From positions 179,404-243,403 of IMG/VR virus record IMGVR_UViG_3300010399_000031: 64,000 nucleotides of DNA. One strand, given 5' to 3'. The translations under genes were made by a program, and so were the position numbers. Below the pieces are notes generated by a model. It saw only the letters and a program-made list of their open reading frames with translations, ran no database searches and was not told the DNA's origin. Of the stretch, positions 5,356 through 15,436 are shown piece by piece. Each line of letters begins with the position of its first letter. The first letter of the stretch is position 1.

Positions 5356-5945
5356 AGATCAAGAACTTTGGTTTTGACGCGCCGCGTGAGACACAGACCA
5401 TGCAGCGCATTTTGAGTGACATCGAAAAGCGCGCGCCACTGCCGCAACTGAACCTCGTGTATCAGACTTCGTCATTACGTCTACCAACTGAGACGGGCGG
5501 ACAACGCATGATTCCTTGTATTTCGTGCACCGTCAACAACGAGAGCAAGGAAGCGTTTCATGCCGCAGTGGTCGATACCGATCCAACCAATGAAGAGTTG
5601 ACTGTACTGCTCACCCACACGAACGGTGGGTCGGTTGGTTTTCGCACAATCTACACGTTCAAACCCCAGGCGGCGGTTTTTATCTCGTTCGACATTTTGA
5701 AGTTCTTCTACGAACGCGTGCCGACGCTTGAAGCGCTCGATGAGGAAGGTAACACCTTGCCTAACCCACTTTTTCACAAACCGCTTGAAGTGGAAAACGC
5801 ACTGAAAGCGGCGTACAAGGATCTTCCGGAGAGCTACACCTGGAAGCTCAATGTCGAGGCACGCAAGCCCGATAACAAGCCAATTATCGTGTGGCACGCC
5901 GAGAAAGACGAAGATTCGCAATCGCCCACGGAGAGCGAGCAATGA
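5352..5945 (+). CDS. hypothetical protein
   Basis: translationally coupled ORF. Confidence 0.75.
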   Translation: MKIKNFGFDAPRETQTMQRILSDIEKRAPLPQLNLVYQTSSLRLPTETGGQRMIPCISCTVNNESKEAFHAAVVDTDPTNEELTVLLTHTNGGSVGFRTIYTFKPQAAVFISFDILKFFYERVPTLEALDEEGNTLPNPLFHKPLEVENALKAAYKDLPESYTWKLNVEARKPDNKPIIVWHAEKDEDSQSPTESEQ

Positions 5946-6358
5946 CGCATGAGTGTATCGAGTTAAATGGTCCGGAAGTAATTCACTTCATCCAAGAGAA
6001 TCAGATCAATCCTCAGCTATTGGAGGACTTGGCTCAAAGCGTGATGCGATTTGAAACTCGCTACAGCGGCGAGATGAACCAAGTGATCTCCTCCAGCACC
6101 GATCTGCGCGCCGTTACCGTTCGCACCGACGAAGGTGAGCATGACGGGTACATGGTCACGGTTCATTACTACAAACAAGCCGATCCGAAAGACCCATCGG
6201 GCTGGCACACCCGACTTTGGTTCTTGACCAAAACCGAAGAAGACAAGATCAACGGCATCTGGGAGTTGGGTGAAAACATCGAACAGGCGGATCTTAATGA
6301 ATCCGCACTCAAGATGACCAAGTACGACGTACCCTTATTCGTGCCGAAGGCTGATTAG
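5942..6358 (+). CDS. hypothetical protein
   Basis: ATGA overlap at 5942 favoured over the track start 5891. Confidence 0.7.
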   Translation: MTHECIELNGPEVIHFIQENQINPQLLEDLAQSVMRFETRYSGEMNQVISSSTDLRAVTVRTDEGEHDGYMVTVHYYKQADPKDPSGWHTRLWFLTKTEEDKINGIWELGENIEQADLNESALKMTKYDVPLFVPKAD

Positions 6359-11508: not shown

Positions 11509-11853
11509 ATGTATAAAACTGAAAAAGGACAAGTGGTAATAGCCGGGGATTGGCGACCCTTTCGTACCGCAATTGAAAAGGCGATGAAGGAAGAGGGAAT
11601 CGAGAAAGAAGTCTCGGAAGATGGCTCAAGCTCCAGTATCCCGCAACAGATTTGGAATATTGGCTGCTTAAGTATTCTGAACTACTTGGAGGCAAAGCAA
11701 CGCCACTGTGGGGATTGTAAGAAACCACTCACAGAAGGTGAAGACATCCGTTGTCTGGATTGTAAGTGGCTCATGTGTCCGGCATGTGCTGAAAGACACT
11801 TTTGGCCTAACGACCGACCCAAGGGAGAAACACATGGGATTGCGCCAAGGTAA
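11509..11853 (+). CDS. hypothetical protein with C-terminal zinc finger
   Basis: CxxC..CxxC..CxxC..H; start reassigned to after the terminator. Confidence 0.65.
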   Translation: MYKTEKGQVVIAGDWRPFRTAIEKAMKEEGIEKEVSEDGSSSSIPQQIWNIGCLSILNYLEAKQRHCGDCKKPLTEGEDIRCLDCKWLMCPACAERHFWPNDRPKGETHGIAPR

Positions 11854-12142
11854 GACCGTCTACGAGATGCGTGAGGGTATGTTCTATTTTGAATGCCCAG
11901 GATGTAAGTACGGTCACGCTTTTTATACCAAGAACGGACCCATTTCAAATGGGGTAGAACAGAACTGGACGTTTAATGGAGATCTGGATAAGCCGACCAT
12001 ACGACCCAGTCTTGATGTATGTCGAGATGACCCGACGCATCGATGTCACTCGTGGATTACTGATGGGAAAATTACCTTCCTCGGTGATTGTTTTCACAGT
12101 TTAAAAGGGCAGACTCTCGACATACCAGAGCTTGAAGATTGA
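11834..12142 (+). CDS. DUF6527-like zinc-binding protein
   Basis: FECPGC..H, WTFNGD..KPT..PS, CHSWITDG.I.FL.DC.H.L.GQT; SD GGGAG. Confidence 0.7.
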   Translation: MGLRQGKTVYEMREGMFYFECPGCKYGHAFYTKNGPISNGVEQNWTFNGDLDKPTIRPSLDVCRDDPTHRCHSWITDGKITFLGDCFHSLKGQTLDIPELED

Positions 12143-12496: not shown

Positions 12497-12808
12497 ATGA
12501 ATACAAAGCTCGATCGTGCAATTGATGCTTTCCTCAACGTGTACGGCGACTTGGAAGGGCTGGAGCGCGCGCAATTCCACGCGATTCTGGCCGACCATTT
12601 AGCCGACGCTATCTCGGATGCAGAGAATGCGGTACAAGCCGTTGCACTCACGGAGCATCGGCGTACGCTGCATACGGTACCGACAGCGCTTGATTGTCTT
12701 GCCAAAGAAGTCGTCGCACGACAAACCAACGCAGCAGTCGAATGGTTACTCAATGCGCATAACCCTGTCGGTTCTGAATTGGAATGCGCGCGGTTTATTT
12801 CTCATTGA
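12497..12808 (+). CDS. hypothetical protein
   Basis: ORF on the coding strand. Confidence 0.65.
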   Translation: MNTKLDRAIDAFLNVYGDLEGLERAQFHAILADHLADAISDAENAVQAVALTEHRRTLHTVPTALDCLAKEVVARQTNAAVEWLLNAHNPVGSELECARFISH

Positions 12809-12829
12809 ACCGGGTAGGAAGGAGACTTA

Positions 12830-13369
12830 ATGCTCACAATCGTCGAGCATCATTCTAGCAGTTATGGTCCAAGGACGTTTCATAACGCAAAAGCTGCTGA
12901 TTTGACAGTGGCCATTGCGGTGGATTACTCCACATTTGGTGAAAAGCTCACCATGAAAGCGGCAGGCTCGCACTTTATCGCTTGTCCGTTTAAGACGGAT
13001 GCTTTAACCAATGCCAGAGAGCTTTATAAGTCGCTGTACCGCTGGCGTGCCTCAGTACTCAATGTGGCCGGTAACGGGATGTCTACGTTTGTCAAACATG
13101 ACGTAACGCAAGAACAAGTGAATCAGTACATCTTTGATATCCTCTCGACTGTGCACAAACATTACCCTCTAGCTGGGATTGTATCTGGGGGTCAAACGGG
13201 TGCCGATATTGCAGGTGCAGCCGTGGGGTACAAGTTGGGCATTGCTACGACTGTGACATTGCCCCATGGGTTTAAACAGCGCGATACAACAGGTGTCGAT
13301 AGCAACCACACTCAAAAAGAGATTCGCCAGCAGATCCTTGATTTCGCAGAGAAAATTTACGCTGCGTGA
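12830..13369 (+). CDS. YpsA/SLOG-family (putative molybdenum-carrier-like) nucleotide-binding protein
   Basis: 'YGPRTFHNAKAADLT', 'VLNVAGN', 'IVSGGQTGADIAG'. Confidence 0.75.
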   Translation: MLTIVEHHSSSYGPRTFHNAKAADLTVAIAVDYSTFGEKLTMKAAGSHFIACPFKTDALTNARELYKSLYRWRASVLNVAGNGMSTFVKHDVTQEQVNQYIFDILSTVHKHYPLAGIVSGGQTGADIAGAAVGYKLGIATTVTLPHGFKQRDTTGVDSNHTQKEIRQQILDFAEKIYAA

Positions 13370-13395
13370 AATAATGTGCGAGAAACCATTGATGC

Positions 13396-13506
13396 GCAGT
13401 GTAGAGCCAGTGTACCCAGCTGAGGGAGAGGGGTTAAGCAGCTGGGGCGACTTGACACATGCTGATGCCCTCCATCATCATCGATGTTTCTGGGTAATAC
13501 CACTGC
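13396..13506 (+). ncRNA. structured RNA, unknown
   Basis: GCAGTG/CACTGC closing stem; CCCAGCTG/CAGCTGGG; TGATG/CATCA. Confidence 0.45.
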
Positions 13507-13527
13507 ACGGCTGCGGTGCAGGCGCAT

Positions 13528-13606
13528 GGGCGAGGGGTATCCACTCCCGGACGGAGAGTCTAGACAGTATAGGCTTTGTTGGGTTCGAATCCCAACCTTG
13601 GCCTCA
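13528..13606 (+). ncRNA. tRNA-like RNA with canonical T-arm
   Basis: GTTGGG-TTCGAAT-CCCAAC T-arm; acceptor-like GGGCGAGG/CCTTGGCC; non-canonical D and anticodon arms. Confidence 0.6.
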
Positions 13607-13625
13607 GCGACAGCAGAAGGATTGT

Positions 13626-13755
13626 GAGGAAGGCTAGGGAATCGATGATCCCAGCAGCGAATACCCCGTTTGCTGCCGAGTCGTAGTAACTGATCCTCGT
13701 GATGGGACGAGGTGTTGGTTGGCTCATTGCAGGTTCAATTCCTGCCCTTAACCTC
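13626..13755 (+). ncRNA. extended tRNA-like RNA with T-arm
   Basis: GCAGG-TTCAATT-CCTGC T-arm; GAGG-AAGG/CCTT-AA-CCTC closing stem; three internal hairpins. Confidence 0.55.
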
Positions 13756-13869
13756 GTTTTCTTTAGACCACTTAAGTGGCACATTGTTGGGTCTCGCCTT
13801 CACTGTTTCACTCCTGGGCGACTGCCATGACTTGACGATGCGCCAACCTAAGTAGTTTCTTGTAGTAGA

Positions 13870-13954
13870 CCCGAGGTAGCTCAGTCTGGTAGAGCGGCGT
13901 CTGTCCGGCCGGTAAAGACGCAGGTCGGTGGTTCAAATCCATCCCGAGGGGCCA
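13870..13954 (+). tRNA. aberrant tRNA (15-nt anticodon loop, encoded CCA; isotype undetermined)
   Basis: D-arm GCTC-AGTCTGGTA-GAGC; anticodon stem GCGTC/GACGC; T-arm GGTGG-TTCAAAT-CCATC; acceptor CCCGAGG/CCGAGGG; G73-CCA. Confidence 0.8.
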
Positions 13955-14013
13955 ATTTCGATAGTATCTGTAACACCCACGGCAGAGATGCCACTTACTA
14001 GGACTAGACCATC

Positions 14014-14304
14014 ATGTTGTATTTGAAAGTAATGTCGAATGAAGATTTACCGGATACCGATCCGCTTAAGGATTTCAGCATCATTCCGATCAATAACACT
14101 GATCGATTGGTGTTTGTGAAGGACCAGTCTTATCCTGAAACGGATGTGCACTGGTGTGCGCTGATTGGTCCTCACGCAGGGTCGAACCAGGATGGATTTG
14201 ACATTCCCAGTCACGACAAAGACCGAGTGGTCCCCTTAACTGGCAACGCCTATGTTTTGAACGAGCAAGGCAAAACCATCGCCAGTCACGGTGTCGTGAA
14301 ATAA
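14014..14304 (+). CDS. hypothetical protein
   Basis: 'MLYLKVMSNE...LTGNAYVLNEQGKTI'; SD AGGA. Confidence 0.75.
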   Translation: MLYLKVMSNEDLPDTDPLKDFSIIPINNTDRLVFVKDQSYPETDVHWCALIGPHAGSNQDGFDIPSHDKDRVVPLTGNAYVLNEQGKTIASHGVVK

Positions 14305-14950
14305 AGCTGTCTGATGAGCCGTGCAAGTCGGCAGATGAGAATCCAATACACGCGATACCTCGCCGCGTGTGGATTTCGTCGGGTGCAAAGCCCACGAAAT
14401 AACGAAGATCACATCGTGTGTCTTGGAAGGACCTCACGGTGGTAGGCCAGATTGCTTAGGACGTCGATGAGCCACTTTGACCGGTGGTGTCCCGAGAGCA
14501 TCTACCTTTTAGATCTTCGTGATTACAGCGGGCGCGCGATGCGTCAAGTTGTGACCTTCTAACCGAATGGAGGAAGGACGCAGCCTGTAAGAACCTATCT
14601 GGGTGAAAGCAGACACCCGTGGACTGACCTCCACGTGAGGTAACGACTGGTCAGAATCGTTATCGAAGATTTAGGTATCTTACGGGGTGCGGAAGTTATG
14701 AATCCGAACCGATGCCTCGCCGGCATTCGCCGAGGAGGGAGTCGCTTGATTCCCTCCTCACACTAGCCTTCATCTTCCCGCAGCTTCGAGTCACACCACC
14801 ATTCGTGTTCGGCAAATCCGAGCGAGTTGGGGCAATGTGCCTAGGCTGCGGGAAGATGTGGGTTGGTCGACCTTGCATCGATGCGCTTTGAGTTGATGGG
14901 TCATGGGAAGAGGGGCGGGGGAGGGCTAAAGCTCTCCCCCAATCCTTATT
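14305..14950 (+). ncRNA. large structured ncRNA (about 640 nt), class unknown
   Basis: many nested helices, a 14-bp perfect stem (14771-14784/14845-14858) and a candidate kissing loop CTGACC/GGTCAG; ends in hairpin 14917-14940. Confidence 0.7.
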
Positions 14951-14980: not shown

Positions 14981-15436
14981 ATGAAATACTGGATTGATGC
15001 AGAATTCAACTCATACGGGGGTCAGTTGATTTCCCTTGGAATGGTGCGTGAAGACAATGAAAGTCTTTACCTGGTGTATAACCGACCGATGCACATTCAT
15101 CCCTGGGTGAAAGAGCATGTGATGCCGTATTTGGATTCAGTGCCAGATCATATTTCGATTCATCGGATCTTTCCCTCCAATTCAGCTAAGTACATCGAGA
15201 AGTTTATGGCGAGTGATGACAATCCTATCGTTATCACCGATTGGCCTGATGATATCTCGTTTTTCAGTGAGCTTCTTCTGACGGGGCCGGGCACGATGAT
15301 CAACATTCCACGGATATCATTTCGCATGCATCGTATAGATGCTTACCCCACGAAAGTCGAAGGTGCGGTGCAGCACAACGCCTGGTGGGATGCCGTGGCT
15401 CTGAAAGCTAAGTGCGAGGAGCTTGGCTTGGAATAA
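14981..15436 (+). CDS. DEDDh 3'-5' exoribonuclease (Rv2179c/RNase AS-like)
   Basis: IDAEFN..GG.LISLG (ExoI), WPDD (ExoII), HNAWWDA (ExoIII). Confidence 0.8.
   Translation: MKYWIDAEFNSYGGQLISLGMVREDNESLYLVYNRPMHIHPWVKEHVMPYLDSVPDHISIHRIFPSNSAKYIEKFMASDDNPIVITDWPDDISFFSELLLTGPGTMINIPRISFRMHRIDAYPTKVEGAVQHNAWWDAVALKAKCEELGLE

Follow-up and report, generated by a model that had tools for sequence, protein, structure and literature searches.

What use does a phage have for a transfer RNA (tRNA) gene whose product has no anticodon with which to read a codon? The question is raised by an 85-nucleotide (nt) tRNA-like gene at positions 13870-13954 (+) of a 64,000-nt stretch of viral DNA, hereafter the window, which comprises bases 179404-243403 of the 243-kb IMG/VR virus record IMGVR_UViG_3300010399_000031 (CheckV completeness 81%), a jumbo phage from soil metagenomes. 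The encoded RNA combines a tRNA body with an anticodon loop expanded to 15 nt and two irregular acceptor pairs, and comparison with relatives from other viruses places it in a conserved, phage-specific family of tRNA look-alikes that keep the tRNA body without codon reading. This family is apparently undescribed: literature searches on expanded-loop or anticodon-less phage tRNA-likes found no description of such a family. The coordinates of the gene, its neighbourhood and the relevant loci in other phages are given in Table 1.

A tRNA body without an anticodon

The preliminary description of the locus listed a D arm, a T arm, a variable loop, an encoded CCA end, a 15-nt anticodon loop and G-A/A-G mismatches in the acceptor stem, and all of these are found in the sequence. 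The Rfam tRNA model (RF00005) scores the element at 39.9 bits against a gathering score of 29, with four arms matched and model positions 1-71 aligned, which assigns it to the tRNA fold; the alignment carries a 15-nt insert in place of the 7-nt loop and flags both non-standard acceptor pairs. The family model R1 gives the element 78.5 bits, and its minimum free energy (MFE) fold is the cloverleaf; the free-energy z-score of 0.18 is uninformative, as usual for tRNAs. Across the whole 243-kb record the element is the sole tRNA-model match, and ARAGORN calls no gene in the window.

The acceptor pairs run, in order, C-G, C-G, C-G, G.A, A.G, G-C and G-C, placing a tandem G.A/A.G at positions 4:69 and 5:68. 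TA lies between the 5' acceptor strand and the D arm, G26 follows the D arm, and the variable loop is the 5-nt AGGTC. The nucleotides that hold the L shape together are complete, comprising U8, A14, G18G19, the G15:C48 and G26/A44 contacts, and T54-T55-C56. Between them, the anticodon arm is predicted to extend into a 6-base-pair (bp) stem followed by a small internal loop and a 2-bp CC/GG helix closed by a GGCC tetraloop.

In a decoding tRNA the anticodon loop is 7 nt long, U33 is present and position 37 is a purine, and the acceptor stem consists of seven Watson-Crick or G.U pairs; the window element has a 15-nt loop, and its acceptor stem contains G4.A69 and A5.G68. The RNA is thus without decoding ability, since it has no anticodon, no U33 and no loop sequence conserved among orthologues, and the proposal that it is a non-decoding tRNA holds: the 15-nt loop presents no anticodon, and the homologues carry unrelated arms on a conserved body. 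Identity elements that work independently of the anticodon are likewise absent (C3-G70 rather than G3.U70, no long variable arm, and A-1/G73 rather than G-1/C73), from which we infer that aminoacylation by E. coli-type identity rules is unlikely. Transfer-messenger RNA was considered and rejected, as ARAGORN finds none and the 3:70 pair is C-G, not G3.U70.

A phage family with the same body

Relatives were sought with pattern scans (the D arm, and the 3' end GGTTC.A.TCC...CC..GGGGCCA) on viral and metagenome contigs, and short BLAST queries against cultured phages added further ones; blastn of positions 12800-14400 against cultured phages gave no match. In this way 22 further members were recovered, so that the family numbers 23 with the window copy (L numbers below denote loci). 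Its shared body consists of the acceptor strands CCCRNGG/CCNRGGG, canonical D and T arms, and N73-CCA. Every trait by which this closed-anticodon family is recognised is present in the window element: the acceptor strands, the irregular 4:69 and 5:68 positions, the arms, N73-CCA, a covarying stem and an odd loop. When the 3'-end pattern was run against one genome each of 185,579 bacterial and archaeal species, it returned four hits, all unrelated, and no family member.

Almost every lineage has an anticodon arm of its own. In relatives the stem strands enclose from 8 to about 47 nt or, in some, a nested tRNA-like domain; the arms are mutually unrelated and mostly take the form of extended hairpins, often with a GNRA tetraloop at the tip. 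L059 has a 7-nt loop (CUGAACA), L037, L045, L058 and L061 have an 8-nt loop (CUCGAAUG) that ARAGORN reports as 'tRNA-???' with the anticodon cgaa, and Achromobacter phage Axy10 has a 9-nt loop annotated as tRNA-Phe-GAA, its only tRNA. Seven loci (L086, L087, L089, L091, L112, L113 and L117) hold 12-15 nt between five-pair stem strands, partly in extra pairs, L062 has a 12-bp arm, and L107 carries a 42-nt insert. Larger inserts are found in cultured phages in which the gene is unannotated: 37 nt containing GGCCGGCC in Ralstonia phages RP12 and RP31, a 42-nt hairpin capped by a GNRA tetraloop in Ralstonia phages FLC1-1B and FLC4-3B, and 46 nt in Burkholderia phage FLC9. With inserts of 37-47 nt in the cultured orthologues, the 15 nt of the window copy mark the short end of a range and not an insertion into a working loop.

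Two further observations concern neighbouring kinds of RNA. Unannotated tRNA-likes with regular acceptor stems occur in Pseudomonas phage Astolliot (L125:997-1082, GUAA cap) and at L096:4285-4366 (UUCG cap), so that capped tRNA-likes also exist outside the family with the irregular acceptor. At L061:9528-9602 (-), an array member is reported by ARAGORN as tRNA-???, with the 4-base anticodon 'ttga' and an 8-nt loop.

Judged by an upstream cpYpsA/SLOG protein together with the RNA, the closest cultured relatives of the window phage are FLC9, RP12/RP31, FLC1-1B and FLC4-3B. The RP12/RP31 orthologue is identical to the window copy in the anticodon stem (GCGTC/GACGC), the variable loop (AGGTC) and the 3' acceptor strand (CCGAGGG), and a scan for nearer orthologues with the window's anticodon stem found RP12 alone. 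The gene is the 3'-most of the tRNA array in FLC1-1B, RP12, L058 and the window, and lies inside full arrays in L037 and L061. A family member is also the only tRNA-type gene in both the window phage and the N4-like phage Axy10; tblastx of the first 40 kb of Axy10 against the window genome gave no match, and no neighbouring protein conserved with the RNA gene is common to the window and the RP12 and FLC loci. As a separate observation, the otherwise near-identical phages FLC1-1B and FLC4-3B differ at 16 positions in tRNA-Gln and at 22 in tRNA-Asn and are identical in tRNA-Asp and tRNA-Tyr, which suggests that single tRNA genes in their array have been replaced by other alleles.

Covariation and the acceptor internal loop

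In the alignment of the 23 members, the four stems (acceptor, D, anticodon and T) have 88% of their cells paired, and compensatory double changes occur at 14 of 21 pairs, including all five pairs of the anticodon stem. None of 500 column shuffles attains the observed values, and pairing drops to 27-52% when the partners are slid. Across the family the D stem is 93.5% paired, with compensatory changes at three of its four pairs, and the T stem is 99% paired, with covariation at three of five. The same behaviour is visible between FLC1-1B and FLC4-3B, in which the sole difference in the body is the compensatory exchange of G7-C66 for A7-U66, and the tetraloop changes from GAAA to GUAA, both of the GNRA type. 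Read from these alignments, the pattern is a clear sign of structural selection on the tRNA shape of the family.

The irregular acceptor positions follow a pattern of their own. Positions 4:69 are unpaired in 19 of the 23 members and 5:68 in 18, and since both are mostly unpaired, the acceptor internal loop is itself a conserved feature. Odd-arm tRNA-likes found incidentally (L005, L061 and FLC9) also have acceptor internal loops, of 1x2 or 1x3 nt.

Reality of the loop and the intron reading

The expanded loop is present in independent data. Over positions 13300-14400, a 244-kb contig from an independent 2023 soil study (run X3) differs by three substitutions and lacks any indel, and another run (X4) contributes a 151-nt contig that matches 13803-13953 without a difference; because both carry the same loop, the 15 nt are real DNA and not an assembly error. 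Only the oddity of the element itself would suggest an error of assembly, or a normal tRNA inactivated very recently by an insertion, and with the identical loop in these two contigs and even larger inserts at the same place in cultured-phage orthologues we regard either as practically out of the question. A normal 7-nt loop, which the preliminary description had named as the observation that would overturn its interpretation, was seen neither in the orthologues nor in the second strain.

The same description had divided the loop into 7+8 nt and offered a carrier of a tiny intron as one explanation; neither idea fits the sequence. If the element were a normal loop with an 8-nt insertion, one of the eight possible 8-nt deletions should leave U33, and none does. 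The idea of a tRNA that is spliced, or repaired in some other way, and loses about 8 nt to become a decoding tRNA could appeal to the GAA present in the near-normal loops of L059, of the L058 type and of Axy10, and these loops point to descent of the family from a decoding tRNA. Against such an intron, which in tRNAs of the archaeal and eukaryal type lies at 37/38, stand the failure of any excision to give U33, inserts in the orthologues that lack a common anticodon or exon-like flanks, no bulge-helix-bulge motif (two 3-nt bulges and a 4-bp helix) on inspection, and the absence of a splicing endonuclease (PF01974, tRNA_int_endo) and of RtcB (PF01139) from the 243-kb phage record, which is 81% complete. 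The reading is accordingly very improbable, and bacteria are not known to possess machinery for such introns. A group I intron (about 200 nt or more) was rejected, with just 8 extra nt in the loop and no Rfam intron match in 13000-14600 at E values up to 10. A CCA-adding enzyme, sought in the phage record, is absent from it.

Double-headed relatives and the palindrome

In three genes of locus L005 and one of FLC9 (Table 1), the anticodon arm of the outer tRNA-like encloses three parts: a hairpin resembling a T arm (for example CCCGG-TTCGAAT-CCGGG), a closed hairpin of 7 bp and a stretch similar to a D loop. These nested parts constitute a permuted second tRNA-like domain in the order known from YrlA. 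The Rfam YrlA model scores the nested L005 domains under its threshold, and a TROVE/Ro gene is absent from the window record, G001, the 29.9-kb L058 fragment (11% complete), FLC9, FLC1-1B and RP12. The window element itself was rejected as a YrlA or bacterial Y RNA, scoring 16 bits with RF02553 against a gathering score of 69, with unpermuted arms and no TROVE gene.

The window loop contains the palindrome CCGGCCGG, for which the preliminary description had proposed a kissing dimer. RNAcofold predicts a homodimer of the window RNA at -18.9 kcal/mol relative to two monomers (relatives, -8 to -16), with an 8-bp intermolecular helix and both cloverleaves kept, so that the proposal is thermodynamically conceivable for the window copy but is not supported by comparison. 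In kissing-loop dimer RNAs of the HIV-1 DIS type the self-complementary loop is kept as a palindrome among relatives; here palindromes of at least 6 nt occur in 6 of 19 family arms against 4.2 expected from shuffled arms (P ~0.2; window alone, P ~0.05). The active form would on this account be a two-headed, tRNA-shaped particle held together through CCGGCCGG, and the second permuted domain in the three L005 genes and FLC9 would then be its covalent version; palindromes of 6-8 nt at the arm tip in L087, L091 and L117 lend it some colour. Any hairpin tip, however, resembles a palindrome, the family arms are not significantly enriched in them, and the arms of FLC1-1B, FLC4-3B, L089 and Astolliot end in GNRA tetraloop caps, and we therefore consider the modelled dimer improbable as the active form. 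The palindrome is no special genomic motif (5 occurrences in the 243-kb genome against 3.8 expected), and no antisense target of the anticodon loop was found in the phage genome with up to two mismatches. A separate feature of base composition is that GGCC is strongly depleted in the whole genome (527 against 961 expected) and CCGG is not (911 against 961), a pattern that would fit a genome avoiding a HaeIII-type restriction site.

Genomic surroundings

Two further elements lie upstream of the gene. In element A the anticodon stem is 8 bp long, the loop is GACAGUA (7 nt) and the T arm is TTGGGTTCGAATCCCAA. Two rhizosphere runs, one a metatranscriptome and one of DNA, contain contigs about 94% identical to it within completely different flanks, which indicates that it is conserved across otherwise unlike genomes; it may be transcribed, and it probably belongs with the gene to one remnant tRNA array. 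Element B, whose 6-bp hairpin is also terminator-like by score, looks like a truncated tRNA, again a remnant. A promoter-like site precedes element A and is a candidate start for a transcript carrying A, B and the tRNA-like gene, as far as its sequence can tell. Downstream, an open reading frame (ORF) begins at 14014 on the same strand, 59 nt from the gene.

Table 1. Positions of the tRNA-like gene, its parts, its neighbours and related loci in other phages (window coordinates unless a locus is named)
Feature	Position	Strand	Remarks
DUF6527 protein	11708-12142		
cpYpsA (SLOG) protein	12830-13369		phrog_10774; 57% identical to FLC9 gp134; also in Vibrio phage ICP1
Promoter-like site TTGACA-18-CATCAT	13452..13481	+	Just upstream of element A; consensus match only
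Upstream element A	13490..13635 (core 13528-13606)	+	Non-canonical tRNA-like fold
Upstream element B	13684..13760	+	Hairpin CCTCGT-GATGGG-ACGAGG, then T-arm-like GCAGG-TTCAATT-CCTGC; no acceptor stem
tRNA-like gene, whole (85 nt)	13870..13954	+	Cloverleaf with closed/expanded anticodon arm and encoded G73-CCA; from Rfam, R1 and MFE fold
Acceptor stem, 5' strand CCCGAGG	13870..13876	+	G4 and A5 (13873-13874) opposite A69 and G68
D arm GCTC-AGTCTGGTA-GAGC	13879..13895	+	With G18G19
Anticodon arm	13897..13921	+	Stem GCGTC/GACGC around 15 nt; predicted fold
Anticodon stem strands GCGTC and GACGC	13897-13901 and 13917-13921	+	
Anticodon loop TGTCCGGCCGGTAAA	13902-13916	+	15 nt
Palindrome CCGGCCGG	13905..13912	+	Within anticodon loop
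T arm GGTGG-TTCAAAT-CCATC	13927..13943	+	
Acceptor stem, 3' strand CCGAGGG	13944..13954	+	With discriminator G73 and encoded CCA
RNase H-like protein	14981-15436		phrog_2259
Double-headed tRNA-likes, 129-134 nt	L005:6438-6571, 6033-6161, 5532-5661	-	Record G001
Double-headed tRNA-like	L120:1651-1782		FLC9
Non-coding stretch, ~310 nt	L121:1613-1926		FLC1-1B, directly 3' of the tRNA-like gene
Non-coding stretch, ~310 nt	L122:1699-2007		RP12, directly 3' of the tRNA-like gene

In FLC1-1B and RP12 the gene is followed directly by a non-coding stretch of about 310 nt in which blocks are conserved and some changes compensate one another (GGGCGGCG/CGCCGCCC against GGGTGGCG/CGCCACCC, for example). It shows three differences between FLC1-1B and FLC4-3B, has no Rfam match, and is absent from the window genome. 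A short motif, (T)(T/C)GTAGTA, is found repeatedly in spacers that immediately precede tRNA and tRNA-like genes, at 13681-13689 and 13860-13868 in the window and in the arrays of FLC9, FLC1-1B and RP12 (L120, L121 and L122), and may be a processing or promoter signal.

Proposed role and alternative explanations

The identity of the family rests on comparison, and everything about its function is inferred. The parts that are conserved are the pairs C1-G72 to C3-G70, G6-C67 and G7-C66, the discriminator with CCA, the D and T arms with their elbow, and the 5-bp base of the anticodon stem. A conserved elbow, acceptor ends and N73-CCA form the set of features read by RNase P, by 3'-end enzymes and by proteins that grasp tRNA from the top. 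On balance we favour, by a narrow measure, an inherited phage-specific, tRNA-derived RNA that has given up decoding and would use its acceptor/elbow half to act on a tRNA-binding factor of the host. In such a scheme the gene would be transcribed together with the remnant tRNA array, and host tRNA end-processing enzymes would trim the transcript to a stable RNA of about 85 nt, with RNase P recognising the elbow, the acceptor and N73 with CCA. The trimmed RNA would not be selected on the ribosome, and its top half would engage the host factor, possibly as a decoy or competitor that cannot be cleaved and that occupies a host enzyme directed at tRNA, for example an anti-phage tRNase. No protein shared with Axy10 in its first 40 kb and no co-travelling neighbour were found, which makes a host factor the more likely partner. 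A nuclease-resistant decoy, already named in the preliminary description, is a reasonable candidate mechanism; we favour, although only tentatively, a mechanism in which the tRNA shape makes the RNA a decoy or competitor for some tRNA-binding enzyme of the host.

A processing and stability handle is nearly as likely as the decoy, by analogy with mascRNA and MALAT1, and is also a tentative proposal. Here the tRNA fold would be kept for host RNase P and 3'-end cuts in a polycistronic transcript; the cut would set the end of a neighbouring RNA, be it that of the ORF at 14014 or the ~310-nt RNA of RP12 and FLC1-1B, and the freed tRNA-like RNA would be a by-product disarmed against entering translation. 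What is conserved coincides with the determinants of RNase P and RNase Z, and it is the anticodon arm, of which these enzymes take no account, that varies freely (PMC11693755); the gene lies a short distance upstream of a same-strand ORF in the window, abuts a conserved structured non-coding stretch in RP12 and FLC1-1B, and is 3'-most in four arrays. Canonical tRNAs flanking the gene in the full arrays of L037 and L061 already supply such cuts, however, and any ordinary tRNA would do, yet one sequence family persists across unrelated phages; the handle also leaves unexplained the conserved 2x2 acceptor loop and the compensation at every anticodon-stem pair. A pseudogene without function in the window phage, left over as the last of a decaying tRNA array, would agree with the rejection of the element by ARAGORN, with the two degenerate tRNA-like remnants just upstream and with the full arrays of related phages. 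It would also agree with the state of two other copies, namely the second strain, with T54>G and CCA>TCA, and RP12, with a T-stem mismatch and TCA. The window body is nevertheless intact apart from the loop and the family-typical 4:69/5:68, with all tertiary-interaction nucleotides present; the odd design is conserved with compensatory changes in 23 members from very different phages, and it is the sole tRNA-type gene that both the window phage and Axy10 have retained, so that we consider simple decay unlikely, less so than the dimer and more so than the handle.

Several of these observations weigh against a host-directed, decoding-free RNA, and others join them. In the second strain (X3), T54>G at 13932 and C>T at 13952 (C74>T, turning CCA into TCA) mean that two of the three differences in 1.1 kb fall within the 85-nt gene, at universally conserved tRNA positions; the chance expectation calculated for these two substitutions is ~0.02, which suggests relaxed constraint or rapid change in the window lineage. 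Nor does every member show the family hallmarks: in RP12 the T stem contains a G.A mismatch, all acceptor positions are paired, and TCA stands in place of CCA. The discriminator is G or A among members, which argues against a single specific partner at the acceptor end. Among 98 distinct parsable model hits an irregular acceptor accompanies 32 of 40 non-canonical arms and 8 of 58 others, an association that is inflated, the loci having been fetched partly by the family's 3' motif and the rows not being independent. The sole RNA run with a match covers element A and not the tRNA-like gene (contigs only), and a decoy role needs high RNA abundance.

If the favoured role is correct, anticodon-less tRNA mimics could form an unrecognised class of phage counter-defence or host-manipulation RNAs that titrate, for example, a tRNA-targeting immune nuclease. 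The capped arm and distorted acceptor would make them uncleavable and untranslatable, and their valency would be raised in some phages by the nested second domain and possibly, in the window phage, by a palindrome dimer; we offer this as a speculation with the odds against it. A tRNA shape that is kept while the anticodon is discarded, as the sole tRNA-type gene of some phages, implies that the tRNA fold is put to use outside translation. Phage tRNAs are in part weapons against tRNA-cleaving immunity, and the cases described so far are working, decoding tRNAs. Standard tRNA finders miss such genes or give them a spurious anticodon, and the family is present in cultured Ralstonia, Burkholderia and Achromobacter phages, unannotated or as 'tRNA-Phe', which makes its role testable at the bench.

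Comparison with known systems

The nearest sequences are canonical phage tRNAs. The phage tRNA-Asn(GUU) and tRNA-Phe(GAA) with C1-G72 and G73 have the same cloverleaf, D arm (TAGCTCAGTCTGGTAGAGC), T arm, 5-nt variable loop and encoded CCA; the window's relatives, like canonical array tRNAs, sit within tRNA arrays, and BLAST aligns the RP12 tRNA-Asn with the whole window element at 74% identity. Loci L094 and L097 have the same body but a normal CUGAAGA loop and a fully paired acceptor. Unlike these tRNAs, the window element has no 7-nt loop, U33 or anticodon, is non-Watson-Crick at 4:69 and 5:68, and is negative with ARAGORN. Frameshift-suppressor-type tRNAs with 8-nt loops resemble L037, L045, L058 and L061, for whose loop CUCGAAUG ARAGORN proposes the 4-base anticodon CGAA; the 15 nt of the window and the 37-47 nt of its orthologues, however, go far past decoding size, and the 8-nt members share the acceptor mismatches.

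Phage tRNAs are used against tRNA-targeting defences (PMC10264068, PMC11464382, PMC11555353). Mycobacteriophage tRNAs and the T5 tRNAs that act against PARIS and retron effectors are, like the window RNA, phage-encoded and clustered, with anticodon-arm changes where host tRNases attack (PMC10264068, PMC11464382, PMC11555353). These defence-escaping tRNAs retain the 7-nt loop and stand in for the cleaved host tRNA during translation, whereas the window RNA does not decode, and only a decoy or competitor role is therefore possible for it against a tRNA-targeting defence; literature searches found no such role for any phage tRNA. Small stable non-tRNA RNAs from a phage tRNA cluster are known in RNA C and RNA D of T4, whose role is unknown (PMC3014915), and these resemble the window element in their small size and tRNA-cluster origin.

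Among non-decoding tRNA mimics, YrlA has real D and T arms, and the nested domains of L005 and FLC9 have its permuted arrangement, in which the T arm comes first, then the closed acceptor hairpin and then the D region (PMC4201824); unlike YrlA, the window element is unpermuted, and the 5' and 3' ends of its acceptor are free, with CCA. The tRNA mimic mascRNA has a longer anticodon-equivalent stem and a compact loop, its elbow is recognised by RNase P and RNase Z, and it is not aminoacylated (PMC11693755). mascRNA and menRNA, cut from MALAT1 and MEN-beta, are eukaryotic, have a reduced D arm and receive CCA post-transcriptionally, and they have no sequence relation to the window element, which has a complete D arm and an encoded CCA. 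They keep the acceptor, T arm and elbow, as the window element does, and are the nearest functional analogues described for it.

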